Of a stretch of DNA of 53,402 nt, positions 1 through 44,355 are shown in pieces. A program made the translations under genes and the position numbers. Each line of letters starts with the position of its first letter. The stretch's first letter is position 1. This DNA comes from Ministeria vibrans ATCC 50519 (Eukaryota; Protista; Filasterea), in contig CALSCP010002390.1 of the NCBI GenBank assembly GCA_943704425.1, positions 1 to 53,402 on the forward strand, read 5' to 3'. The notes below the pieces were generated by a model. That model was given only the letters and a program-made list of their open reading frames with translations, was not told the DNA's origin and made no database searches.

Positions 1-578
1 ACAACGATGCACATGGCTCTACAAGCGTGCGCTGGTCCGCCAATCAGTCCAAATGGGATTTTGAGTTGACCCTCAAAAATTAAACAGTTCGTCTGTCCAT
101 TGAATATACATTGGTTTCCAGCGAAACCAGGTGGGGAAGGCACAATAAAGCGTGTGCGGCACAGCTAGGGGTCGCATGGGGGACTGTGTCTCGAAATGGA
201 CACAGAAAGAGAATTCGTCCAAACCCCAAACGTTTGAGGGCTCTTCAAAACGCACCAGCTGCGCGTCTTACCTGTACGGAATCGCTTACAATGCAGTCTC
301 GTATGTGTTCGTGACGCGTAACAGGAAAGCGTTCGCTGAGGTGAAGAGACAAACGTCAAAAACAGAATGAACTCACAGCTGTGCGACCCTTGCGCCGGGG
401 CTGTGGGTCTTCTGCGTCTCTTACTGCAGTGCTGCACCTGTCAGTCGGGCTGTCACAGAGAAGCAGAAACTCAATTGATAATATTTTGATTTTATTCATT
501 TCCAATTTTCCATTTTCTCGAGTGATTTCAAAGTAAAGAAGAAACCATTTAAACGATTAACGAACAGTAAGGCGCAAG

Positions 579-639
579 CACTCGCCACTCTCCACTCGCC
601 AGTCGCCACTTGCCACTCGCCACTTGCCACTTGCCACTC
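579..639. repeat. Tandem 7-bp repeat (CACTYGC, about 9 copies) upstream of BI-1
   Basis: cactcgc cactctc cactcgc cagtcgc cacttgc cactcgc cacttgc cacttgc cactc read directly. Confidence 0.9.
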
Positions 640-765
640 TGCGTCCTGCGATCGCATTATTCGCAATACAAAAAAAAAATCGAAATTCAAAAGCAATTAA
701 TAATTATCAAAAATTCAAAATATTTAATTCCATCTCCACAGCTACGTTACAGAAGGTCATCTACA

Positions 766-1991
766 ATGGACATGTTCAGCCGACGCATCAACTGGCACGC
801 CGTGGGCAGCATGGCGCCCCTGACGCCCCACATCCGGTCTCATCTTCGCAATGTCTATCTCCTTCTCGCCGCAACGACCGTGGCCGCCGCCGCCGGTGCC
901 TCTGTGCACCTCTTCACCAACTTGCTGCAGGTATCGGTTTTGGGCGTTGAGACAATGTGCGACTGTTCGCGAAGGAAACCAATAGAACAACGTTTCGACT
1001 TTCGCACTGCCACATCAGCACTCTGCGTGCACGCCACACGCCCCGCTCTGCCCTATGCCCACGCGTGCCATTGCCCCCTGCGTCGCTGCTCGCCTGACCG
1101 CTCACTCTCTTCTGAACTTTTTGTTTTTTCGTTTCTTTTTTTTGTGTGTGTGAACTTTTGGTTCATACGAATTGCGTTTGACACAATTATACATAATGAT
1201 GTGTCAACGCATCCAAACTCCGCCTCACAAGCCACATGACACAACTCATATACTGTTTTGCATTGCTTTGTATGATCGTGTCTGTTCCAATCTACTTATT
1301 GTTCATTGTGATTATTGTGATTGTCTCACGCACTCACTCACTCAATTTCGCAGGGCGGCACATGGTCGGCCATCGCGGCGATCGGCATGCTGTTTGTGCT
1401 TGGACTGAACCCGCCCAATGGGAAGAACGCAACGTCGCGCATTCTGATGCTGCTCTCGTTTGGCTTCCTCAAAGGACTGTCGCTGGGCCCTCTGCTTGGC
1501 ATGGTTCTGCTTATCGACCCGGCCATTGTCACCACTGCGCTCACCATGAGCACTGTACTCTTTACGACTCTCTCCCTCTCAGCGATGTTTGCGCAGCGAA
1601 GGGAAATGCTCTTTCTCGGAGGTACCACAAAGAACGATTAGAACGTCCACAATAATAATTGTAATAATTATATTACTGACAACAAATTTCCATTGTGTTG
1701 ACAGGAATGCTCTCGTCGGCTCTCTCAATGATGTTCTGGATGTCGATTGGGTCGTTGTTCTTCGGACCATCGCTGTTCATGTTCAACATTCAGCTGTACG
1801 TTGGTCTGTTGGTCTTCTGCGGATTTGTCCTCTTTGATACGCAAATGGTCATTGAGAAGTGCGCCATGGGCAATTCCGACCCTGTGTCACCCGCTGCTGA
1901 GCTCTTTATCGATTTTGTCGCTATTTTTGTCCGCATTCTCATCATTCTTGCAAAGGACGGCGGAAAGAAGAAGAAGAACGATCGTCGTTAG
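766..1991 (+). CDS. TMBIM6: Bax inhibitor-1 (TMBIM6 family), 3 exons: about 766-930, 1354-1621, 1705-1991
   Basis: Spliced translation: HIRSHLRNVYLLL...GFLKGLSLGPLL...IDPAIVTTA...RREMLFLGGMLSSALS...LYVGLLVFCGFVLFDTQMVIEK...LFIDFVAIFVRILIIL plus a basic tail KKKKNDRR. GT-AG boundaries are in phase. Confidence 0.95.
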
Positions 1992-2032: not shown

Positions 2033-2455
2033 TTATTTTGAACCGCCCACAATGGCCAAAATATAGAGAAACAGATTGACAATGTCCAAATAGAGATTCA
2101 GAGCGGCAAAAACGTATTCTGCACAGATAAAACAAAAATGATTATTTGCGACTTTTCTCTGTCGCTTGGCTTCAACTGACCTTCGGGCGACACTGCCAGT
2201 TTGTGCTTTCCGCCAAGCATAATTTGTGTATCGTAGACCAGATAGAGTGCAAAAATGATTGCGCCCAGAGAGGCATAAACCATATTCACCACCTAAACCA
2301 AGAATGGGTACATTGAGTGTTATAGGAAGTCATCAAATGAAATTTGATTGCTATTGAGTCCCAATGAGTGGAATTTTGAGTTTCAATGAAAATGAAATGC
2401 ATTGATTGTTGTTATGGAGATGTCTCACTTGCATCTCACGTTGCTTCTTTTTCTT

Positions 2456-2496
<41 letters not shown>

Positions 2497-3102
2497 TTTT
2501 TTTTTTTTTTCTGTTCTAACCTGATTGGAAAAGGGAATGCAGAGAAATCCAAACATGAGCAGACCAAAGAGCAGAACAAAAAGATAGGGACCAGCGCCAG
2601 TAAAATCGTACTTGGTCTAACAAACAATGACAGTGAGTGACAAATCAAGAGACTGGACGTATAAGATCACACAGATACAGTGAGAGACACACCTGGAAGG
2701 CAAAGAGAGTGAGGCCCAGCACAAGGACTGCGACAACACCAATGGCAATGAGCACTTCGTCAATGGAATAGAATGAGCTGATGACGCCTACAAGGTAGGC
2801 CTCCGCCAGCGTAAATATGCCCAGGAAGATGTAGTTGTGGGGAGTTTTGCGACGCAGGCCGGGACAACATGCCAGGCCGATCAGTGCGCCCAGCGAGATG
2901 CCCCACGCAGACCAAAACATGGAGTTGTTGCCCTGGATGTAGTTCTTGACGGTGTCGTTGAAAATGAACAGACACGTAATGGCGCCCGTCACAAGAAGCT
3001 GCAAAAACAGCAAGCCGTACACCTACAAGCACACAAAAATCTCTTTGAGTTTCTAATACATACCACAAGAAAAACACACGTACCACAGACACCTACCACA
3101 AG

Positions 3103-3158
<56 letters not shown>

Positions 3159-3429
3159 GCACACACACACACACACACACACAGCGACACACGCGTACCT
3201 TCTTAAGAAACGCCCGACGAATGTCACGTTCTGAGAAGCTCGCTAGGAAATCTGTTGGAACTTCGCCCATTGGCACTGACGTCTGCTGGCCATACTGCGG
3301 TTGCTGGTGGGACTGCTGGTGCTGCTTGTAAGGGTCTTCGGCCAGCAGCAGCGCCTGGTTGGGTGATTCGCCGTACGTCGCCATTGACTGCAAACCATTG
3401 GTTACAGAGACGTCTCGTAAACTCTCTCA

Positions 3430-3463
<34 letters not shown>

Positions 3464-3694
3464 AACTCAAACTCAAACTCTCTCAATCTCTCTCAATATC
3501 TCTCTCAAACTCTCTCTCTCAAACTCTCTCTCTCCAAACCCCAAAACACTCCTCCGAGACCCAGACCAACCTCAGCACCATCATGCCCACCCGCCCATGC
3601 GCTTGTGGCACCGCGGGTGGCGTAGCGTGCCCCAAACGAAAGTTGAAGAAAAATTCCCAACCAGTCAACCACCATAAAAAGTTTTTTTTTCTCC

Positions 3695-3727
<33 letters not shown>

Positions 3728-3891
3728 CTTCTTCGCCCCTGGCAGTCGCGCATGCTCTGTTTTACCTCGTCGTAGTTGGGCGGGGCATCTGCGGCGTAGG
3801 CTGAGCCGGCTCCGGCTGAGTAACCGGCGGAATAAGGAGCTGACGGCTGTTCGTCCGCCTTGACGGGGATGTAACTCCCGGATCCCGACAT
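2033..3891 (-). CDS. Lifeguard/GRINA/FAIM2-like TMBIM protein, about 6 exons
   Basis: N-terminal APPNYDE (PPxY), [86 protein letters not shown]. The last exon (2118-2033) was translated manually. Confidence 0.93.
3104..3183. repeat. (CA)n microsatellite in a Lifeguard intron
   Basis: Direct reading. Confidence 0.95.
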
Positions 3892-4142
3892 TGCTTGCTG
3901 GATGGTATGCAGTTGATGCCTCACACAAGCGGAAAGGAGTATTAAATAAAATTGGTCGCGAGTCGAATAACAGTCGATTCCAATAACAGTCGATTCAGAA
4001 GTGATCAGTCGAGACACAAACCACCATAATAATAAAATTAATTAATAATAATATTAATAATAATAATTATATTAAATTTTTTTTATTATTATTATTATTA
4101 TTATTAATTATTATTTACTTTTCGGTCTTTTTCGTCCTGTGA

Positions 4143-7100
4143 ATGCGCCCACTCCGCCTTTCTCCAGTCCTCCTGGTTGCCACACTGTGGTGTCTTCAGT
4201 CCACGTCAGATGCTGCGTCCATAGTGGGCCATATTGTGCCCCACTCGCACGACGGTAAGACCCGCAAGCACAGCGCACACTCACTCGCACACTAACAATG
4301 CTCCCCCTGCCTCCCCCGCTCAACAGACGTCGGCTGGCTCGTCACCCTCGACCAGTACTACGACGCGTATGTGCGACGCATCTACTCGTCGGTCGTCGAG
4401 GCTCTCGGGCAGGCGCCTGCGCGGCGGTTCATCTCCGTCGAGATGGCCTTCTTCAGCAAATGGTGGCACGACACAGCGCACGTCAACGACACGATGCGCG
4501 CCGGGGCACGACAGGCCGTGGAGCGGGGCCAACTTGAATTTGTGGTGGGCGGCTGGACCATGCAAGACGAGGCGTGCACGACGTACGGAGCAAACATTGC
4601 GCAGATGGCGCACGGACATGCCTTCATCGACAGTACGTTCGGTGAGCGTGCCAGACCCCGTCGCGGCTGGCAAATCGATCCCTTTGGCGCAAGCAGCTCG
4701 TGTCATGCTCACTTTCGCGAAATGGGCTTTGAGAGCACCCTGCTCGATCGGGTGTACAAGCCGCTGAAGGAGGAGCTCGAGCAGACGAAACAGCTGCAGT
4801 TCCACTGGACGCCACTCCACGGCAACAACGACACTCGCATCTTCACACACATAATGGACTCACACGGCTACCCCACTGCAGTCCCCGAACTCGCCTGGTC
4901 GCGCCGCTCTGAGCCCATCACGGACCAAAATATTCACAAACGCGCTCAGTCCATTGTCGACAACCTGGTCAAGCGCCAAGAGTGGTTCGAGACCAATCAG
5001 ATTCTCTTTCCGTGGGGCGACGACTTTGCTCACTCGCGTGCAGTCCTTGACTTTGACAACATGGACAAACTGGTTGCGTACATCAACGCACACTCCGCCA
5101 GTGACTTTGCCAATGTGACAGTGCGCTACTCGACGCTCAGCGAATTTTTCACCGCACTCACTCACTCGTCGTCTCGTCCCTTCCCGTCCGTCCCACCCCG
5201 CGACTACTTTCCTTACTCGGACGTTGGCAATCTGACTTTTTGGAGCGGCTACTTCACCAGTCGACCGGCTCTCAAACGGACAGCACGTCAATCGGAGTCA
5301 TTCCAACGCACAGCGGAACTCACTCAGTCAATCTCCGGCGCTTCCTCTGCCCTCCCAGCACTCGCACAGCTGCGCGACGCATGTGCCATTCTCACGCACC
5401 ACGACGCTGTCGCAGGCACAGCTCAGGTGCTGGTCAATCGTGACTACTTTGACCGAGTCCACTCCGCTCAGTCTGCCGTCACTCCCATCCTCGAACAGTC
5501 CATCTCCTCTCTTCTCAATGCCACCGTGCCCCTCTCACTCGACCCAAATCACATGAAATCACTTTCGACAGACTCTCCAGGTTAACACGCATTGCAAATC
5601 AATCACAACGCACTCAAGCTTTCATCGAATTCAATCAAACTCAAACTATCGACTAAACAAATTTTCCAAACTGATACGCTTGTCGATACTTCTGTAGTGA
5701 CTGTGACTGTCTTCAATCCGTCTTCTTGGACCCTCACCCAATTTATTTCAGTCCCTCTCTTTGCACTGCCCTCTCAATCCCACTCCGTTCTCACCGTCCA
5801 CTCACTCAACGACTCTCCCCATTCCAATGAGTCTCCTCTTCCCACTGACATTCTCCCTCAGATTCCCTCTCACCCACAGTACTGTCAAAGTCCCCTTTCG
5901 TGCGGCTACCCTCAAACCAACGCCACTCATTCCCTCTTCTTCCCAATCACTATTCCTCCTTTGGCCTTCCGTTCCTATCGCATCCAACTTGCTCCCTCAC
6001 CCAAATCAAATCCACTTCCGATCGTCTCTTCCTCTCTCCGTTCCATTCAAAATGGTCAGATTCAACTCAATTTTGATCCACAGTCCAATTTGCTCATGTC
6101 ACTCACTCACATTGAGAAAAATTGGACTCAAAATGTGCAACAGAATTTTTTTGAGGTACAAAAGCAAAACAGACAAGGAGATAGTTTGTGTGACGAGAGT
6201 GATTTTTAGTATGAAGATATGGGAGATTTGCACATTAAAAAAGCGCCAGGAGGTAATTTCAATAGGCACAGAAACCCCACCCAATGTGTCACTCATTCAA
6301 GCCACCACCACCTTTAATGTGTTTTCAAACAGTCAATGTGTCAATCATCTTAATGCCCTTCTCATGCCCACACTAATACATTTCACCCAGGCGCATACAT
6401 CTTCCACCCAAAGGGACCAGCAGACGCACTCACCGGACAGCCCACACTGCACACAGTCCACGGCCAGTTTGTCTCTGAAGCCCATCAGTCTTTCACATCG
6501 CACTGCGACGATCCTCTCCTCCACTCTCACTCCTGTGGCGTCTCTCAGGTCTTTCGTGTCTACCGCTTCCCGTCTGAAGAGAGTCGGAGCACTGTACACT
6601 CAGAGAGCGTTCAGATTCTCAATCAAATGGGCCCTCTGAAAATGCAGAGAAATATTGTCTCTCGTTGGTCTCTGTCTGACTTTAACAATGGAAAACAGGT
6701 CGAGACGGACGATAACTGCTTTACAATGCTCAAACGTCCCTACGTCAATGGATTGCCCAGTACACACACACATACCCACCACAAAGATACACCACACACA
6801 CTCACCACAAAGATACACCACTCGCACACACACACACTCACTCACACACACACTCACACACACACTCATACAATCGAGACAGAGAGTGAGAGAGAGACAC
6901 ACACTGAGTGACTCCCTTTTATTTTTGCAGTTGCGGGTCAATATCATCCAATGACGTGTCGTGTGTCGAGCACAAGCAGTAATACCAATAGAACGATTGC
7001 ACTGTTTACAGATCGCACTCGAGGCGCATCAGCGCTTAATCAAGAGGGACAGGTACACTCATACTATTGGCAGACACTCAGTCAGTCACTCGCCCACTCA

Positions 7101-33777: not shown

Positions 33778-36700
33778 TCAGAGATCATCCGCTGATTTCA
33801 ATCCAATGGTTCCGCCACCCTTGCCTCCGTAAATGTCGCGTGTCGAGCTGCCCCACTCGTAGTTGGGTGCAGGTGCGCTGCTACCACCGCCACCGGGACC
33901 CTGCAACGTAAGCGCACCGCCCACCACCTGTCCGCCATCCTGTTCGTCCTCGAGTCCGTCGGCGGGCGCTCGCTGGCGCGCAAAGAAACCCATCTTCCAA
34001 GCAACCACAATGACAACAATAAGAAGGACCAACGAGCCGGCAACGGCACCCGCAACGGCCCCCGTGTTGATACCGCCGCTGGACGCACCCGTGTTTACAT
34101 TGTCCACCGTCGAGTCTTCGGTCACATTGTACGTTGCAATCTCCATGATGGACGGCAACATGTCGGGCCGGTCCGTCGACGAGACAACAGTCACATTGTA
34201 GTGCAGGGTAAAGTCATTGTCAATGGTGCTGGCAATGGTGCCAGCAACGACAAAGGAAGAGACGGTGCCGGGCGCACTACGCCCAAAGACACAGGCGGTG
34301 GTGGTGCTCGCCGACTGCAACTGGCACTTGGAGTCGACAATGCGCATGGTGTAGCGAGCACGGTGGGCGTCGTCAATGGGCGCCACAATGAGCACGCCCT
34401 CGTTGGCAAGCAGCGTGTTGGGGCCGTTGTTCACGACCGTCACCGTCATCGTAAAGTTGGACGAGGGGCCCACCAGCGCACTGGCGGGCGTCAGACGGAT
34501 CGACGAGTACTGCAGGTCGCTCGAGGGCACCGATAGCGTCACCGTCTTCGTGACTGCATTGTTGGTGAAGCTGCGCTCGGGCGTGCTCGAACTCGCCGTC
34601 ACCGAGCCCGTCAATGAGAACACCGTGCCAATAGGCGTGCCTGTTACGGGCACAAAGACCATCTGGACTGTCGAGAGTGCGTTGAGGGCCATGTCGCCAA
34701 AGCGAAAGGTCGAACCAGCAAACGTCACGTTGGCTGGCAGCGCCGCAAGCGTCGCGGTAACGTCGAGTGTGAGCAGCGTGGCATTGTACGGCACGGTGAG
34801 TGACGCGTTGGCAGCCAAAAAGGGACCCAGGTTGCGGACGGTGTAGGGCACGCGGAAGTTAGTGTCGGTGAAGGAAACGGGTGACGGGGAGGCAGCGCCC
34901 GCCGTCAGGGCAAGGTCACACGGCCGCGAGATGGTCGACGACAGGGTCACTTGGTTGTTGCTGGTGAACGAGTCGGTGGCAACGCTCTGCGCCGAGGCCG
35001 TCGACGAGAAGAAGCCCGACACGCTGCCCACAGTGTGTACCAAAACTACAACGATGTCGCTGCCGCCCTTGGCCAGCGAAATGCCCGTGCACGAAATGTC
35101 CCAGCCACCCGGCGAGCCAGAGCGCGCTGTGGGGACACACGTGCCGCGCGACGAATCAACCAACGCACCCGACGACGGCTGGGCCATTTCCAGGTTGATG
35201 GTGAAGGTGGCGGTCACACTGGTGGCGTCGTTGGCACCCGTGTTTCGAAGGGTCGCACGCAAGTAGATGTCATCGTTGAGGAAGATAGGCGGTGTCGGTG
35301 TGAGCGTGTACGACACGCTCACGTCGACCGTCTTGTCGATGGAGACGCGTGTGGTCAACGCATTGTTGCTCGACACGGTGTCGTCGCTGCTCGCGCCCGT
35401 CGACACCACAGCCGAAATGTTAAACGCATCCGCAGGCGACGCGGTCACAACAAAGGCCATGTCGAGAACCTTACGCTCGTTCAAGACGAGTCCGCCAAGT
35501 GTACACTCGACCGTGCCCGACGATGGGTTGGTGCACCCCGAGGGAAGTGCCTCGGCCGGGTTCACGCCTACGCTCGCCACGGGGAAGGTCACGGTGACAA
35601 GGCCCGAGTCGCCCACAAGCAGATCACTGGGTCCTTGGTTCACGGCAACCACACGTAACGTCAAGGTCTCGCCCTGCGTCGGCATGGCACTACCCGAGCT
35701 CGAGGTCACACGCAAATCGTTCATCGCAACATCTGAGCGACGACACACCGCCGGTCCGAACACAGATAGTTCACTCGTGGTCACGTTGACGGTGGCGTCG
35801 GCCCGCAGTGTAAACGTCGCGGGAATACGGTCAACGACGGTGGTGGTGGAAAGCACGCGCACCGTGTTGATCACCTCGATATTGGCGCCCTTGCCCACAC
35901 TGCCAAGCAGACATGTCACATAGGAGCCGGTGGTGTTGAGCACGCAGGGAGCGCCGTTGGAGACAAAGGCACGAATGAAAGAAACGCGCGTCAGGTCGAG
36001 CGTTTGCACAAGGACCACATTGGAGGCGGAGTTGGGACCCTTGCCGGTCACAATCGCACGGTAATTGTACAGGTTGCCGGCGCACACAATGCCGTCAAGT
36101 GCCGTGTTGTTGGTTGCCGTCATGGTGATGACCGCCGACGTCAAGTCAATGGTACGGCTCGTGGTGGTGATTGAGTTCTGACTGCTGTTCTGGTCGAGTG
36201 ACTGCGAAGCGGACGCCGAAAAGGTGATGCTGACTACGCTCGCGGCGAGACCCACATCAAAGCCAAAAGTGAGGTTCTGGAAGACGGTGTAGGCGGCGCT
36301 CACTTCAAGCGAGTCGGCCAGACACGACAAACGACCGACAACAGCGCTGCAGTCAAATCCTGACGCACCCGGGCCCGAAATATGGATACGACCAGTGTCC
36401 ATGGCAAACACACCGGTACTCAGCACCGCAGCAAACTCAATGCCAAACGCCGGCGAGGGTCCCACGTTACGGAAACGCACCATGGGTACAAAGAGACTAT
36501 TGCTGTCGCTGAGCAGTGCCACCGATGAAATCTGGTTACCGTCCTCGTCGATGGCCTCCAGTTGAATGGACGATTGATCGACTTCCAGGTCGGCCACAGC
36601 CACAACCGAGCCAGTCTCGGTAGCACTCCAGTCGGTCGCGGTGGCGTCGTACAGAGTGGTCGAGACGGGCAGGGCCACCGTCGCAGCAGTCGTAATGGTG

Positions 36701-37156
36701 GGCGACGGGGGCGCATTTGCCTCAGACAGGGGCTCGTAGTTGACGGTGATGACACGAGAGGCGCTGCTCGCAATGGTTCCAATAGAGGTACACACCACCG
36801 GATTTGAGGTAGTCACACATGAGAACTCGCCGACCGAATATGACACGGAAGACAGATTGAAAGAGGGATCAAGCGTGATGCTGACCGTGACCACATCGGT
36901 GATGATGGCAGGTCCGCCATTGCCAACGGTGACAGTGAACACAATAAGACCGGGACTCTCCGTGACAAATTGCTTCGAGCCAGCGCCAGTGTACACTCCC
37001 GCAACAGTCGTGTACAGATCGACATTAGGACGACCCGAAAGCGCCACTACACGTCCCGTTTTGCTGTTCGCTCCTGGTTGTCCAATCACCAAGTCAAGTG
37101 TCTACGAAATTTAATAACAACGTTGCAAAATCAGTAAGAATTTATTATTATATTAA

Positions 37157-37209
<53 letters not shown>

Positions 37210-39643
37210 TATTATCATTATTATTAAAAATTCTTACTTGACTGCTGCTGGAGAGATCGTCCAGGTAGACGCCGTTGGAGAGGGAGTAGCCAAAAAGACC
37301 GTTCGCAAGGTTACCCGTGATCGTCTGAGTGGCGGTCGTGGCAAGACCGGTGGGCGAGGCAGCGCCGAGGTAGATAAAAACCTTGCCGAGACCGCTGCTG
37401 GCGTACGGCGCACCCACCACCAGGTCCATGATGCCGTCCTGGTTGGTGTCGATGTGTGCAAGAGAATAGCCAAAGCGACCGGACGAGTCCGATCCGGAGA
37501 GGGTGGTACCAGCGGAAAGCCTCAGCGAAGTGGCACCCGATCGTTCACGGCCATAGTAAATGGTGACCTTGCCGGTCTCGGGTGCACCGTTGGTGAAGAA
37601 GGGCGAGCCGACAGCGAGATCGGGGTACGAGTCACCATCAAAGTCGGCAACATGCAACGACATGCCATAACCGGCGCCCATTTGAGAGCCGTCGCCGCGC
37701 CAGAGGCGTGCATTGCCGCTCGCCGAGGCACGCACCTCAACGTAGCCGGCATACGACGAGACGTACGAGGCACGCGGTGCGCCCACGACAAGATCCATGG
37801 CGTCGCTGCGAGAGCTTGCATCCGTTGTAAAGTAGCCCTTATCCATGGCCTGGCCATAGTAGATGTTGTTGGTATGATCGCCTGACGGCGGCGACACGAC
37901 AGTGCGACCCGCACCGGTATTGCCGGCACCCATGTTGTTGTTGGTGCCAAACTCGGTGTAGCCCTGCGACGAGCCGCCCTCCTGGCCGACTGACGAGACA
38001 ACGAGGGAGCCGTCGCTGTTAATGAGTGTAGCACTGCCAAATCCATTGTAGGCGTAGCGATTGGTCGAAGCAAGGTCACTGACGGTACCGGGAAACGAGG
38101 CGCCACCGGCAACGGAGTAGGCGCGACCGTCGTCGCTCGATTGACACGACGACGAAAAGCCGTAGTCGACGGTGGCGGTACCCTCGGCGAAACCCTGAAC
38201 GCGAACCTTGAGTTCCTTGTTGGTGACACCTGTGATCTCAATCCATTCGTCGCAGGGACAGCCAGTGCCCGTCTCAATGAAGGGACAGTAATGACCACTG
38301 TACTTGTAAGAGACGCCGTCGTAGCTGACCGTGTCGTGCTGACAGTGCGGCTGCGACGACGGTGCCGAGTTGACACAGTAGTTGCACAGCCAGTTGGGAA
38401 TGGCATAGCCGCCCGGAGGCAAGTTGTTCGTCTAAAATGGATGCATTTGGTGAGCTCACAACAACAACAAAAAAAAAATGTTCCGTTTTAACAATGATCA
38501 TATTTTCATACTTGATAGTAGCCGACAATGCGCTTGACGGTGCTGTCGGTAATGTCTTCAAGGTAGGTGTCAATATCGACGCCGCCGAGCGCCTTCATGC
38601 GCACAAAAACATCCTTGCGGTTGATGGGAATGATACCAACATCGATCCAGGCATTCAAGGCGATGAAGCTGGTAAAGGTACCGGTGCCTGACGAGCACTC
38701 GGAGCCCCAGTTGAACTCGGAGTCACTTGAACCGCCGCCTTCCGGTGCAAAGATGCGGCCATCGTCAGACGAGCAGCCTGCCGCGCTAATGAGCAGATCA
38801 TCGTACGAGTCGCCGTTGATGTTGCCCAGCGCCAGGTTTCGCCCAAAGTACGAGCGGTACTTGCAGGTGATGTCGCCATTGAGCGTTGGACCCACCGTTG
38901 CCTCAGGCTGCACAGCAACTCCCGGGTCTGTGACATCCTGGTACACATACACACGTCCCATCCATGTCTCCGAGTCGGTCGGGCTCGTTCCGGCCGAGCC
39001 GGAGTAGTTGGGCGCACTAACAACAACTTCCAGAAAGCTACACAACGTACAAAGGGAGAGAGAGAGAGAGGAAAAAAAAAAAAAATCAGTGACGAAGTGG
39101 CTCGTACGGCATCTACAGATGATGTCAGGTGTTGTTCGAGTACGGAATACACCCGTAGAGTGTGCTACGCCGGTGTTGAGGCGACAAGACACGCCCACAG
39201 AGCGGTAGTAAGGCGGAAAGTGGATACGGACGACGACAGGTCAAAAAAAAAAAAAAGGCTCTTTTCTCTTTTTGGTTTCCCATTGTGAACAAAGGACACT
39301 GAGCTCTCAGTAGGTGTGTACAGCGTTAAACAAGAATGAGGCGAAAAGCGGGGGCGCGGGCAGGGAAAAGACGGCAAAACAGGACGGATGCAAAGCATTT
39401 CTGATTTCTCTCTCTCTCTCTCTCTCACTCTCTCTCGAGAGAGAGACGATTTTGATTGCGTTTTTTTATTTCTTACTTTGCAGTGCCGGTGACTTGCCCG
39501 ACAACGATGGACGAGCCGTAGAGAGAGTCGGCTTGGCTTCCGTCATGGCTCCACAGAGGCGAAGCGAGATTGTCCTGAAGGACTCCGCGAGAGCCTGTCG
39601 CAAAGAGCGCCAGCACGCCCGCTGCAACAATCAAGAGTCGCAT
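33778..39643 (-). CDS. Integrin alpha subunit: 7-blade FG-GAP propeller with an inserted domain, about 7 DUF11/Ig-like leg domains, TM, KMGFFAR; 4 exons (about 39643-39477, 39037-38512, 38431-37238, 37101-33778)
   Basis: Signal peptide; FG-GAP repeats with Ca2+ loops (NINGDSYDDLLISA, DFDGDSYPDLAVGSP, DTNQDGIMDLVVGAP); repeated N-x-G-P Ig domains; LVLLIVVIVVAWKMGFFAR. Confidence 0.93.
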
Positions 39644-39966
39644 AGGGACAGAAGAAAGGAAAAGAGAAAAATTGATCAGTTGTGTCTTTGGAGTTTGAAG
39701 TTTTAAACTTCTGATGATACCGCGAGACACACAGGCCCGAAATGGAACAAAAGGAAAGCGGTGTTATCCATGACGTCAATTCGAGAGAAATATTGCCTCT
39801 GCGACTCTTTTTGCCCCCGTATCATATCATATATAGCTATTAACTCCAATTAGGAGCTATTGGTTGCAGATTGAGGGCCAGACGAAGAGGAAGTGAAAAA
39901 AGGGAACGATGATCAGAACTTTCAGAAGAGTTGAGCCTCATTTTTATTCGTCCCCCTGCGCCGACC
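39644..39966. promoter_or_regulatory. Probable bidirectional promoter shared by integrin alpha and beta
   Basis: 323 bp between divergent predicted ATGs (39643 minus, 39967 plus). Confidence 0.7.
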
Positions 39967-42900
39967 ATGGTAGCACGTCGTGTTTTTATGGCCATCATAG
40001 CTGCCGCCATGATCAGCAGTGTCTGTGGACAAGCTTGCTCAACGTACACGACATGCGATACGTGTCTGGGACAGGTAAATAGTGAGTGTGATCTCTCTCT
40101 CTCTCTCTCTCTCTCGCGCGCTCTCTGCGCTCTCTCTTTCGCTTCCTTCCATCTCCCGTGGCACTTCTTCTCTCCCTCCAATCCGCATATACTAACCCCC
40201 TCGGTGTGCTACCATTGATGACTCGTGCGACGCCCATTAGGCCTTGCGACAGTCAGAATGCGACGAGTTCTTCTTTCGTTTTTTTTTTCTCGTCCTTTCA
40301 TCCTCTACCGCCCCTTGTTTTCAATATGTTCTGTGTCGTACGTCCTGGCATGTTGCGGACGTTGTGAGGGAGAGACGAAGGCAAAGCAGAGTCTTTCTTT
40401 TTTGCTCAGAGAAGTCGGGAAACGATTCGCGGAAANNNNNNNNNNTTCTTTTTTTTTTTTTTTTTTTTTCTCTTCTCTCTGGTCATAATTTCATCTGCTG
40501 CCATGTCGAAAGTGGACGTTGCGCACCGTGCTGCTGCTCTGAGTGGGGCTCTTGATGGGTGTTTTGTGTGCTGCGTGTCTTTCGTTGTCCGCCGTCTCAT
40601 GTCTTGTCTCTTGGGCAGGTCAACACGGCCACTTCACCCAACTCCGTTTGTGGCTGGTGCGTCACCAGCACAACCGCCTACTGCTCGAGCTCTTCGTCGG
40701 GATGTGTCTCGTATGAAGACTACAAGGTACGCACGACGCAAGAGAACACGATAATGAGAATGCATAATCATCACCTTACCTGTCTGTGTTATGATGATGG
40801 GTCACACAGGTGAATGGCGTCGCCGGCAGCACTGTCGCCGTCACGGCCAACGACACCGCTCTGGAAGCCTACCCGCAAGAATTCAATGTCTACTTGCGCA
40901 AGCGTACGACTACCATACTTGTTTGTTTCGTTCTTTTTGTTTTGCTCCGTTTCTAAAAAGTCTTTTTGTCTTTGTCTTTTTTTTTGTCTTCATAATAATA
41001 TTAATAATAATTATTATTATTTTCTTATTCCTAAATATTTTCTTAATTTCTTCTTCTTCTTCTTCTAATTATATTCTTTTTGTAGACGAACCTGTTTCGC
41101 TGACAATTAGTGTCAAGAGTCAGGGATGCAAGAAACTCGACTTGTACTACCTGATGGATTTGTCGCAGTCGATGCTCAACGATAAAAACACACTGGAGAG
41201 TCTGGCGACGGATCTGTCAAACAAAGCGACAGAGTTGTGCGAGGCAGGCTGTCCCGGCGGTGCACCCGCCGACTGTGTCTCGCTTGGCTTTGGCTCCTTC
41301 ATTGACAAGCCCATCTCGCCCTTTGGCTACTGGACACAAACGACCAACGAGGCGCTTACGGGCCCGCTTCCTGGTCTGCCATTCTTCGAGACGTCGTCGC
41401 CTGCATGGGACTACGTCTGGCGTAACTCTGCGCCTCTTCTGGCCGCCAACAGTGGTGGTACGGATGCATTTCGTCTTGGTGTGAGCAACTCGGAGACACG
41501 TGAGAACATAGACCAGCCCGAGTCGGGTCTGGAGGCGCTTTTGCAAGTGGCCGCGTGCGACACCGAGGTCGGCTGGCGCTCCGATGCGCGACGCATTGTT
41601 TTTTACGCGTCCGACGCTGACTTTCACATTGCTGGCGACGGCGCACGTGCCGGTATTTACGCCAAAAATGATGGTACTTGCTACGTCACGTCGCCCAGTG
41701 GCACCGACACAGTCAAGAACCGCGAGATTGACGCTGCCAGCATTCGCCAGGACTACCCCTCCATCAGTCAATTGAGTCAGTCGCTCATTGGCTCGAACAT
41801 TGTGCCCATTTTTGCCTACAAGGAAACGACCCTCCTTGCCGAGGCCAAAAACTCCCTCGTCTATCCCAACCTTGTGACTCAGCTAGGCTTTGGTTTCCAC
41901 GGTCAGCTCGCCGAGTCGTCGGGCAACGTTGTGGCGCTTCTCGAGTCCGCCTACGCCTCCATTTCAACAACCATTCGTTTGGAGACTCAACGCAACGGCA
42001 ACGAGGCGCTTGTCTCGTCCATTTCGCCGTCGCAGTTTACCAACATTGCAACGGACGTGGTATACTCCTTCACCGTCACCCTTGAGTACGACGGCACCAC
42101 CGCCTACGGCACCAATCTTCCCGTGGTCTTCACGCCCCTCGGCTTTAACCAGGTGACCGTGCACGTGACCACTCAGCCCGACGCCACCTGCTCCTGTGCT
42201 TCCAACTCCGACTACTGTCCCGCCCTTCACTGTGGCAACAGCGGCTCCTGCGAATGCGGCAAATGCACCTGCCCAACGGGCTCCTCGGGGGACAATTGTG
42301 AATGTTCCAACGATGTCACTCCCTGTCGCCAGGGCCAGACCACTTGTGGCGGTCGTGGTGTCTGTGAGTGTGGCGTATGTGTCTGTGATGCGGTAAGCGG
42401 AAAAACGATTATAATAATATTATTATTATTTTATTACTTTTATTAATTTTTCTTTTTGTTTCGTTTGGTAGGGTTTTACCGGTCAATTTTGTGACTGTTC
42501 CACCGCATCGTGTCCCACGTCGCTGACGGCGCTCGGAGATTGTTCAGGCAATGGAATTTGTGAGTGTGGTACTTGCAACTGTACCAATGGCTACACTGGT
42601 TTTGACTGCAGTTGCCCACCAAACGACCCGTCTCAGCAGTGCAACGCGACCATTTGCGGCAATTTTGGTGCATCGACGGGCTTTTGTGCGACGGCGTCGG
42701 GCCAGTGCAACACGCAACAGTGCGAGTGTGTGTCCGGCTGGCAAATAGACAGCAATGGTGCGTGTTCGTGCCAGCTACTCCCTTGCCCTCTTGGTCCCAA
42801 CGACCAACCGTGTAACTCTCAAGGTACCTGCGGCTGTGGTGGGCTTTGTCAGTGCAACGCTGGCTGGACCAGTACCGCGGCGAATGCTGCGGACGGAAGC

Positions 42901-44355
42901 TGTGACTGTGATTCGACTGCGGTGTGCCCGAGCGACGAAAACGGACTCGAGTGTGGCGGCATTGGTACGTGCAACTGTGGCACGTGCGAGTGTCCGCAGG
43001 AATACGAGTTGCCTGCAAACTCAGAAGACCCCAGCTATGCATGCACCTGTCTGAACACAGAGTGCCCCTCGTCGGCAACCGCCGAGTGTTCGGGCCATGG
43101 TAACTGTACGTGCGGCGTGTGTGTGTGTGAGGCGGGGTTTGCCGGCTCAGACTGCTCGCAGCCTTGCAACGTGGGTGGTTCGTGCCCCGTCGACAGCGTG
43201 AGTGGTCTCGACTGTGGCGGCGCATCGCAGGGCACGTGCAACACTGAGTGTTCGTACTGTGTGTGCGAGCGTGATTGGACCGGTGCCGCTTGCAACTGCT
43301 CGGAGGCCCAGTGTCTGTCGGTGACGGCGGGCGAGTGCAGTGACCACGGCAGTTGTGTGTGTGGCGCATGCGAATGCGACGCAGGCTATGGCAATGCGGC
43401 CGAGGGATGCCGCTGTGACCTGTCGACGCCCTGCCCGACGACGGCATTGGGCGCGTGCGATGGCTCGCTGCACGGTAGGTGTATTGTCGGCGACTATGAC
43501 AGCGACGGCCGCTTCCAATGTGGCTCTTGCGAGTGTCTCACCGGCTGGAGCGGCACCTTCTGCAACTGTTCGACTGCGTCGTGTCCCGTCGACTCGGATG
43601 GTATTGAGTGTGGACCGCAGGGCACGTGCAACGGCTGTGGCGAGTGCGAGTGCAACTCGGGCTGGTCACTGAGTGAGTCTGAGGTGTGTGACTGCGAGGA
43701 CAACGCGCTGTGCGGCGGTGTGATCACGGTCAACGGCACACAGGTGGACTGTAACGGCCGCGGTTCTTGCCAATGTGGTATCTCCTGTGAATGCGTCAAG
43801 CCTTACAGCGGCTCCAACTGTGAACTGTGTGACTCGGACCTGGCTGCAACACTCAACACAACGTGTCCCAACGACGTGTGTTCGTCGATTTTGTCGTGCG
43901 AAACGTGTGCGCAAAACAGCCTTTGTGGCTACTGCGTGACTCTGGGTGCGTGCTATACGCTGACGGAAATTGGTAGCGTGTGTGCGGGTGGCACGACGGC
44001 GCTGAGCGGCTCGGAGACGAGTAACTGTGTGACGACGGGCAAGTCGCTATCACAGGAAGCCAAGGTGGGTATTGCGGCGGGCGTGGCTGGCGCCATCATC
44101 GGCATTGGGCTGTTGTGCATTGTTATTTTCAAGCTGGCACAGGTTGCGGCAGACAAGCGAGAGTGGAAGGAGTGGGAGAAGCAGCGCGGACGGGCCGCCT
44201 GGTCGTCGAACGGCAACCCGCTCTTCCAGCCCAACACCAAGGAATTTGACAATCCCCTCTTCCAGAGCAAGACACAGAAGGCCTCGAGAAAGTCGAGTTT
44301 GTACCATTCGCAATCACCTACGGCGCCTGAAGCAGTGGAGCAGAGTGACTTGTGA
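39967..44355 (+). CDS. Integrin beta subunit: PSI, hybrid, beta-I (vWA), about 12 I-EGF, PSI-like tail, TM, two NPxF motifs
   Basis: LDLYYLMDLSQSM (MIDAS), GFGSFIDKP, NIDQPESGLEALLQVAAC..VGWR..ARRIVFYASDADFHIAGDG, DYPSISQL; tail KLAQVAADKREWKEWEKQRGRAAWSSNGNPLFQPNTKEFDNPLF. Confidence 0.97.

Follow-up and report, generated by a model that had tools for sequence, protein, structure and literature searches.

A head-to-head integrin alpha/beta gene pair of the filasterean Ministeria vibrans, another example of a known holozoan arrangement

Background

Integrins belong to the basic adhesion machinery of animals, and how they evolved before animals arose is a subject of active study. The alpha and beta integrin genes of animals are not known to be linked head-to-head. 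A stretch of 53,402 nucleotides from the filasterean protist Ministeria vibrans ATCC 50519 (contig CALSCP010002390.1, assembly GCA_943704425.1), called here the window, carries one integrin alpha and one integrin beta gene as divergent neighbours. This locus raises the question of what such a neighbourhood stands for: whether it is real, whether it serves the joint supply of two receptor subunits or also the choice of partner, and whether it was inherited or newly formed.

We propose, with a probability of about 0.85, that the single canonical integrin alpha of this filasterean lies head-to-head with one of three betas in an inherited layout and that both are co-supplied as an adhesion receptor. 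Head-to-head alpha/beta pairs have been published before, four in Capsaspora and one in Corallochytrium (Grau-Bove et al. 2017, PMC5560861); according to the same work all four Capsaspora betas are paired, the Capsaspora pairs are co-expressed, and synteny among these holozoan lineages is rare. The preliminary description of the window, made from the sequence alone, mentioned head-to-head linkage for one Capsaspora pair, which was right but understated; two of the four pairs were re-verified here. The layout in Ministeria is therefore a known arrangement, not new as a kind, of which it presents a further example in a third holozoan genus. The Ministeria pair itself was not found mentioned in the literature searched.

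Structure and transcription of the two genes

Both genes are intact, transcribed and spliced. The alpha gene, on the minus strand, has four exons (5211 nt, 1736 aa), and the beta gene, on the plus strand, was modelled with five (3501 nt, 1166 aa); in both, all introns are of GT..AG type and the frames are open. The alpha gene starts with the ATG at 39643 and the beta gene with that at 39967, on opposite strands and with the 5´ ends of adjacent genes facing each other, separated by 323 bp (39644-39966). The preliminary description had announced a full-length, divergent alpha and beta at this distance in a probable protist, and Pfam matches, gene models and contigs all bear it out.

Contigs of public runs were aligned over window positions 37000-42999 for splice joints. 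The runs containing this stretch are marine or algal-culture samples, and spliced contigs came from two RNA libraries, the organism's own RNA run and a marine poly-A metatranscriptome. Database searches were made with single exons, one at a time; the whole alpha was represented by P0120, a public spliced product of 1561 aa from a Joint Genome Institute (JGI) sample. The gene models comprise the following features.

39643-39477, minus strand: alpha exon 1, with ATG at 39643, signal peptide, first FG strand and GT donor
39037-38512, minus strand: alpha exon 2, 175 aa, blades 1-2 and start of an inserted domain; FG-GAP 1.4e-06 (Pfam)
38431-37238, minus strand: alpha exon 3, 398 aa, latter half of that inserted domain, blades 3-7 and calcium-binding loops; FG-GAP 1.3e-21 (Pfam)
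37101-33778, minus strand: alpha exon 4, 1107 aa and stop, end of blade 7, leg, transmembrane segment, KMGFFAR and tail
37102-37237, 38432-38511 and 39038-39476, minus strand: alpha introns, with splice joints from RNA contigs
39967-40074, plus strand: beta exon 1, 36 aa, signal peptide and first half of a putative PSI domain; open frame, GT donor
40075-40618, plus strand: beta intron 1, GT..AG, with N gap, misplaced 32-bp fragment and long poly-T tract
40619-40726, plus strand: beta exon 2, 36 aa, second half of the putative PSI domain (CGWC); junction to exon 3 in runs X13 and X18
40810-40903, plus strand: beta exon 3, 94 nt, hybrid domain (N-terminal strand); X18 pieces at 40808-40903, then from 41086 onward
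41086-42392, plus strand: beta exon 4, 435 aa, beta-I/VWA domain, hybrid domain and first I-EGF; Integrin_beta 4.1e-53 (Pfam)
42472-44355, plus strand: beta exon 5, 627 aa and stop, about a dozen I-EGF repeats, transmembrane segment and tail
40727-40809, 40904-41085 and 42393-42471, plus strand: beta introns 2-4, with splice joints from RNA contigs

As read directly from the translations, the alpha propeller consists of seven FG...GAP blades, the later ones with calcium-binding loops of DxDxDxxxD type, and a hydrophobic transmembrane stretch is followed by KMGFFAR (33976-33996). Between them, exon 4 encodes a leg of about 1000 aa composed of DUF11-type Ig-like repeats. Pfam assigns three DUF11 repeats to it (5.4e-24) and gives no match to the integrin thigh/calf (Integrin_A_Ig) family. 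Outside Capsaspora, the best matches of the leg are bacterial TIGR01451/DUF11 repeat proteins with 25-29% identity, and these bacterial proteins carry precomputed matches to PF20806 (Integrin_A_Ig_3).

Splicing of the alpha gene is supported by RNA contigs. One of run X13 joins 39477 to 39037, one of run X18 shows the 37101/37238 junction, and both junctions of exon 3 are present in contigs of the two runs. P0120 is 100% identical to the alpha over the search-matched region and holds exons 1 to 4 in order, with junctions exactly matching the model (exon 1 at its residues 4-51, exon 2 at 53-227, exon 3 at 228-625). It differs from the window protein in at least two residues, all of them inside one 25-residue stretch of exon 3, whose ends are the codons holding positions 37491 and 37563. 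At both positions a G>A difference is common to X6, an algal metagenome, and X13, the marine metatranscriptome. These differences suggest that the environmental sequences come from another strain than the assembly does.

In the beta subunit, the beta-I domain (PF00362 in the Pfam match of exon 4) contains DLSQS, the sequence of the metal ion-dependent adhesion site (MIDAS), at 41157-41171, and further NIDQPE, both read from the translation. Residues D24 and E145 fit invariant metal-site columns of a 46-sequence alignment, and S26, S28, D142 and D176 fit its near-invariant columns. Exon 5 matches EGF_2 (9.6e-16), I-EGF_1 and, at 44131-44262, Integrin_b_cyt (6.2e-11, all Pfam); two NPLF motifs can be read in the tail after the transmembrane segment. 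RNA support for this gene covers introns 2, 3 and 4 only, and the junction between exons 4 and 5 (42392/42472) is present in contigs of both X13 and X18. A 174-base contig from a poly-A RNA library lies inside intron 1 (40141-40288); it could be unspliced RNA, carried-over DNA or the product of an internal start site.

Neither exon 1 nor exon 2 of the beta gene, each searched singly, gave a Pfam match to PSI, because the putative domain is split between them. Taken together, the two exons provide both halves of a PSI-like cysteine pattern, and they align collinearly to residues 27-41 and 45-67 in the PSI domain of Capsaspora CAOG_01283, each match being weak alone. The cysteine pattern and the collinear alignment are the reason why exon 1 was assigned to exon 2.

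Integrity of the assembly at the locus

A gap of undetermined bases at 40436-40445 had raised the concern that the arrangement is an artefact of assembly, in which a wrong scaffold join places the body of the beta gene beside the alpha. Because the gap falls within the first intron of the beta gene, it affects no reading frame. It is left unbridged by contigs, and at its left edge there is a misplaced fragment: the sequence at 40404-40435 (32 bp) is identical to positions 111491-111522 of contig C2759, internal to that contig, and in sequencing run X1 it sits in a contig of 2412 bases with flanks different from those in the window. The assembler has probably left the chimeric end of a contig here. 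In X1 and in X6, an unrelated algal metagenome, contigs exit at 40403 into poly-T and resume at 40485 after a T/CT tract, and we read the break at the gap as a long homopolymer.

Against a false join stand several observations. One contig in each of two independent DNA runs (X1 and X6) covers 39449-40080 without interruption. The first exons of both genes and the spacer between them thus lie on one continuous piece, and assembly did not create the head-to-head layout. On the two sides of the gap, exons 1 and 2 of beta are collinear halves of one putative PSI domain, both gap-flanking contigs end in the same poly-T tract, and Capsaspora shows the same layout. We therefore consider a misplaced beta gene body extremely improbable.

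Integrin complement of the genome

The question whether other integrins of the organism are paired was followed in its own genome (29.7 Mb in 2860 contigs). Three integrin betas were found, the one in the window and those at C749:6890-9554 (L001) and C376:51948-54950 (L003), all of them complete with beta-I domain, EGF repeats and cytoplasmic tail. No FG-GAP gene adjoins the C749 or the C376 beta: upstream of the former lie a divergent AAT-domain gene and then a Fuz/Mon1-type longin gene, upstream of the latter a flavoprotein gene. On the alpha side, a transmembrane stretch with GFFxR occurs in one of the 16 FG-GAP loci of the genome, that of the window, and the leg of this alpha has no paralogue in the genome. 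Earlier work (bioRxiv 10.1101/2020.04.29.069435) described, among the Ministeria ITGA paralogues, soluble multi-blade proteins with EGF domains and just one alpha that has a transmembrane segment and a GFFKR-type tail.

The tally is thus one canonical alpha, three betas and one linked pair, and pairing holds for one third of the betas. It goes against the proposal in the preliminary description that linkage fixes the choice of partner: with one canonical alpha and three complete betas in the genome, there is no set of alphas from which linkage could select. A role in co-regulation is likelier. Given some 10^4 genes, one alpha and three betas, we estimate that divergent adjacency of an alpha and a beta would arise by chance in about one of several thousand cases.

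Relatives of the pair and phylogeny of the betas

Two pairs of Capsaspora, another filasterean, were re-verified in assembly GCA_000151315.2. In the first, a 1717-aa FG-GAP protein with a faint PF01345 match is encoded divergently from CAOG_01283 (KE346361); in the second, a 1721-aa FG-GAP protein is divergent from CAOG_05058. These pairs share with that of Ministeria the divergent orientation and a long alpha (about 1720 aa) with a DUF11-like leg, and their betas of about 1060 aa resemble the window beta in having VWA, many EGF repeats and a cytoplasmic tail. The lineages differ in the extent of pairing, which includes all four betas in Capsaspora (PMC5560861) and one of three in Ministeria, and in compactness: about 1.1-1.4 kb separate the gene ranges of the two checked Capsaspora pairs, whereas 323 bp separate the start codons in Ministeria.

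With the Capsaspora alpha that neighbours CAOG_01283, the window alpha aligns over 1128 aa (E 4e-33), a range that takes in the leg in full; with the other Capsaspora alpha the alignment is weaker. Because of this alignment, the DUF11-like leg is to be seen as common to Capsaspora and not peculiar to the window alpha. An exhaustive HMMER search with beta exon 4 returned five proteins scoring far above animal betas, led by one from Pigoraptor chileana (285 bits, 40% identity) and CAOG_01283 (245 bits, 43%), the nearest named beta by identity; the others are a second Pigoraptor protein, one from Syssomonas and one from the Logan contigs. By lineage, the nearest betas are those of filastereans and pluriformeans. 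The nearer of the Capsaspora alphas is linked to the nearer beta, so that alpha and beta similarities rank alike in these two pairs.

A side case of linkage comes from the Logan contigs. One of them (L029, from SRR33270664, 6405 bp, GC-rich) encodes an intron-less beta of 1078 aa (2308-5544, plus strand) head-to-head with a partial FG-GAP-like gene (2-1684, minus strand), with a spacer of 623 bp. Two environmental beta loci, L025 and L026, have no alpha neighbour.

A tree of betas was built from 26 rows under LG+C20+F+G4 and rooted with bacterial beta-like proteins. One branch with support of 100/98 separates two sets. On one side are the animal betas, the C749 and C376 betas and one protein from the European Nucleotide Archive (ENA); on the other are the window beta, the two verified linked betas of Capsaspora and the linked Logan beta, together with two betas of Pigoraptor, one of Syssomonas and one of Corallochytrium. 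Forcing the C749 and C376 betas into the linked group changes the log-likelihood by -24.75 units (p-AU of the approximately unbiased test 0.0085), where the linked group was named after the tree had been seen and both betas sit on long branches (1.8 and 2.25). A comparison of alpha and beta trees had been suggested as a check on co-duplication, and its beta part places the window beta with the linked holozoan betas, the unicellular-holozoan clade that includes it being weakly supported (82/67).

On this basis it is possible, though we hold it for less than probable, that two old beta lineages coexist. One would be a protist type, head-to-head with a long-legged alpha since before the split of filastereans and Corallochytrium; the other, an unlinked animal type represented by the C749 and C376 betas, would be the source of animal betas. 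If this is true, the unlinking of integrin genes predates animals, and either the one alpha has to serve all three betas, from both lineages, or betas of the animal type use a non-canonical partner. The asymmetry itself, a lone alpha beside three betas of which the protist-type one alone is linked, seems to us the more useful lead, as it bears on the timing of the unlinking of animal-type integrins and on partner use before alpha genes multiplied.

Corallochytrium limacisporum resembles Ministeria in having one head-to-head pair in a unicellular holozoan, from a different lineage (Teretosporea, Ministeria being a filasterean). A Corallochytrium beta stands on the window beta's side of the tree.

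Compared with animal integrins such as alphaV/beta3, the Ministeria pair shares the seven-blade, calcium-binding propeller and a beta-I domain with residues of the MIDAS, synergistic metal ion-binding site (SyMBS) and adjacent-to-MIDAS (ADMIDAS) types. A putative PSI domain, hybrid and I-EGF domains, transmembrane segments, the GFFxR clasp and NPx[YF] tail motifs are likewise common to both, as is, by prediction for Ministeria, a head interface around the propeller axis. The Ministeria subunits differ in that both legs are much longer, the alpha leg gives no Pfam match to thigh/calf domains, and the propeller carries an insert that is not a vWA domain.

Model of the integrin head

The preliminary description spoke of a complete heterodimer encoded from one promoter, and recommended modelling of the dimer. 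The alpha head (P0120 residues 16-655) was modelled with residues 1-345 of beta exon 4 in three runs, along with three controls. The interaction prediction score from aligned errors (ipSAE) was 0.79 for the pair (median of three runs) and 0.36 for the best of three controls; in calibration, 51 of 78 solved complexes and 2 of 108 mismatched pairs attained the mark set for this score. The runs had 58% or more of their contacts in common, and the partner's predicted local distance difference test (pLDDT) was at least 79. On the alpha side the modelled contacts encircle the propeller (residues 37 to 639); on the beta side they involve residues 76-265. The predicted complex passes its controls, and it is plausible on this model that the alpha and its linked beta form a heterodimer. 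The presence of both subunits and their predicted fit agree with the original claim; its promoter part we infer from the layout.

A stricter reading would make the pair a dedicated module, in which linkage restricts the alpha to the neighbouring beta while the unlinked betas use some other partner or act alone. It would agree with the window beta being the only linked one, with its place in the protist-type lineage, distinct from both unlinked betas, and with the passing complex model. The genome, with its one transmembrane GFFxR alpha, holds no other canonical partner for the C749 and C376 betas, gene linkage alone does not enforce pairing of proteins, and the complex test does not discriminate between family members; we consider such a restriction unlikely.

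The spacer as a putative shared promoter

The region between the two genes is listed as one feature.

39644-39966, no strand: spacer, presumed bidirectional promoter and both 5´ untranslated regions

A perfect palindrome of cAMP response element (CRE) type, TGACGTCA, is located at 39771-39778, at a distance of 128 bp to the ATG of alpha and 189 bp to that of beta, and is the single copy in the 53-kb window, with 1.39 expected. As it was noticed post hoc, we treat it as a lead only. The spacer also contains TATATA (39830) and CCAAT-N8-ATTGG (39846-39863). The other two CCAAT-N-ATTGG copies of the window sit at the 3´ ends of genes, and this motif is for that reason not promoter-specific. A separate observation is that the spacer of the Logan contig L029 holds that contig's only TGACGTCA. 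A bacterial-type promoter scan was set aside as irrelevant to a eukaryote.

Both genes were found as spliced contigs in the same two RNA libraries. From the arrangement, stoichiometric co-regulation of alpha and beta through the shared spacer is plausible, and its 323 bp present a very compact setting for a test of bidirectional promoter activity. An analogy of layout, from an unrelated family, is offered by the COL4A1/COL4A2-type collagen IV pairs of animals. There, a bidirectional promoter is shared by two genes placed head-to-head, whose products are subunits of one extracellular assembly.

Proposed role and origin of the arrangement

Under the explanation that we prefer, both genes would be read outward from the short shared spacer, and because transcription is divergent from this common region the two subunits would be made together. 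Alpha propeller and beta-I domain would hold them together as an adhesion receptor at the cell surface, which the KMGFFAR clasp and the two NPLF motifs may couple to talin-type adaptors and actin; coupling of a Capsaspora beta tail to talin-type adaptors has been reported (review PMC9453864). The layout itself would represent the conserved alpha/beta microsynteny of Capsaspora and Corallochytrium, derived from a common holozoan ancestor and not newly formed. With a pair from a third holozoan genus, the published case for an ancestral linkage, probably kept for co-regulation, becomes stronger.

Several points weigh against this explanation. No DNA or RNA contig of the public runs bridges 40404-40484, and none of their RNA contigs covers beta exon 1 or the junction of exons 1 and 2. 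The passing of the complex model may reflect the model's memory of known structures, since integrin heads have already been solved, and the model does not single out the alpha's partner among the three betas. The promoter function of the spacer is putative, and so is co-expression of the two Ministeria genes. Finally, TGACGTCA is absent from the two Capsaspora spacers examined, and consequently no shared promoter element is shown.

This lack of a motif common with the two Capsaspora spacers would also suit another possibility, that the adjacency is a historical relic, inherited and now neutral, with separate core promoters and independent regulation. So would the abundance of divergent neighbours with short spacers in a compact genome, a caveat raised already in the preliminary description and supported by the map of open reading frames in the window. 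A neutral relic is harder to reconcile with an arrangement kept in at least three holozoan lineages despite the rarity of synteny, with the co-expression of the Capsaspora pairs (both PMC5560861) and with the splicing of both Ministeria genes in the same RNA libraries. We regard it as quite improbable, less so than a misassembly and more so than a dedicated module, and retain co-supply of the two subunits from an inherited gene pair as the explanation.

Other observations

The own-genome searches also recovered a gene of collagen IV type, at C372:34129-34714 (L005, L006), in which two C4 (NC1) domains follow each other in tandem. Together with the filasterean nearest relatives of the window beta, this gene led to the rejection of Thecamonas as the source, which had been considered for its marine habitat and the 2011 date of runs, and made Ministeria vibrans the most likely one. 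Capsaspora was rejected on the count of three betas, one pair and 2860 contigs, and on an identity of only about 40% to its betas. Outside animals, a collagen IV gene with the C4-C4 arrangement has been described only in Ministeria vibrans (PMC5560861; PMC13366479). A data set on aggregation of Ministeria displays ITGA and ITGB among its genes (PMC13366479).

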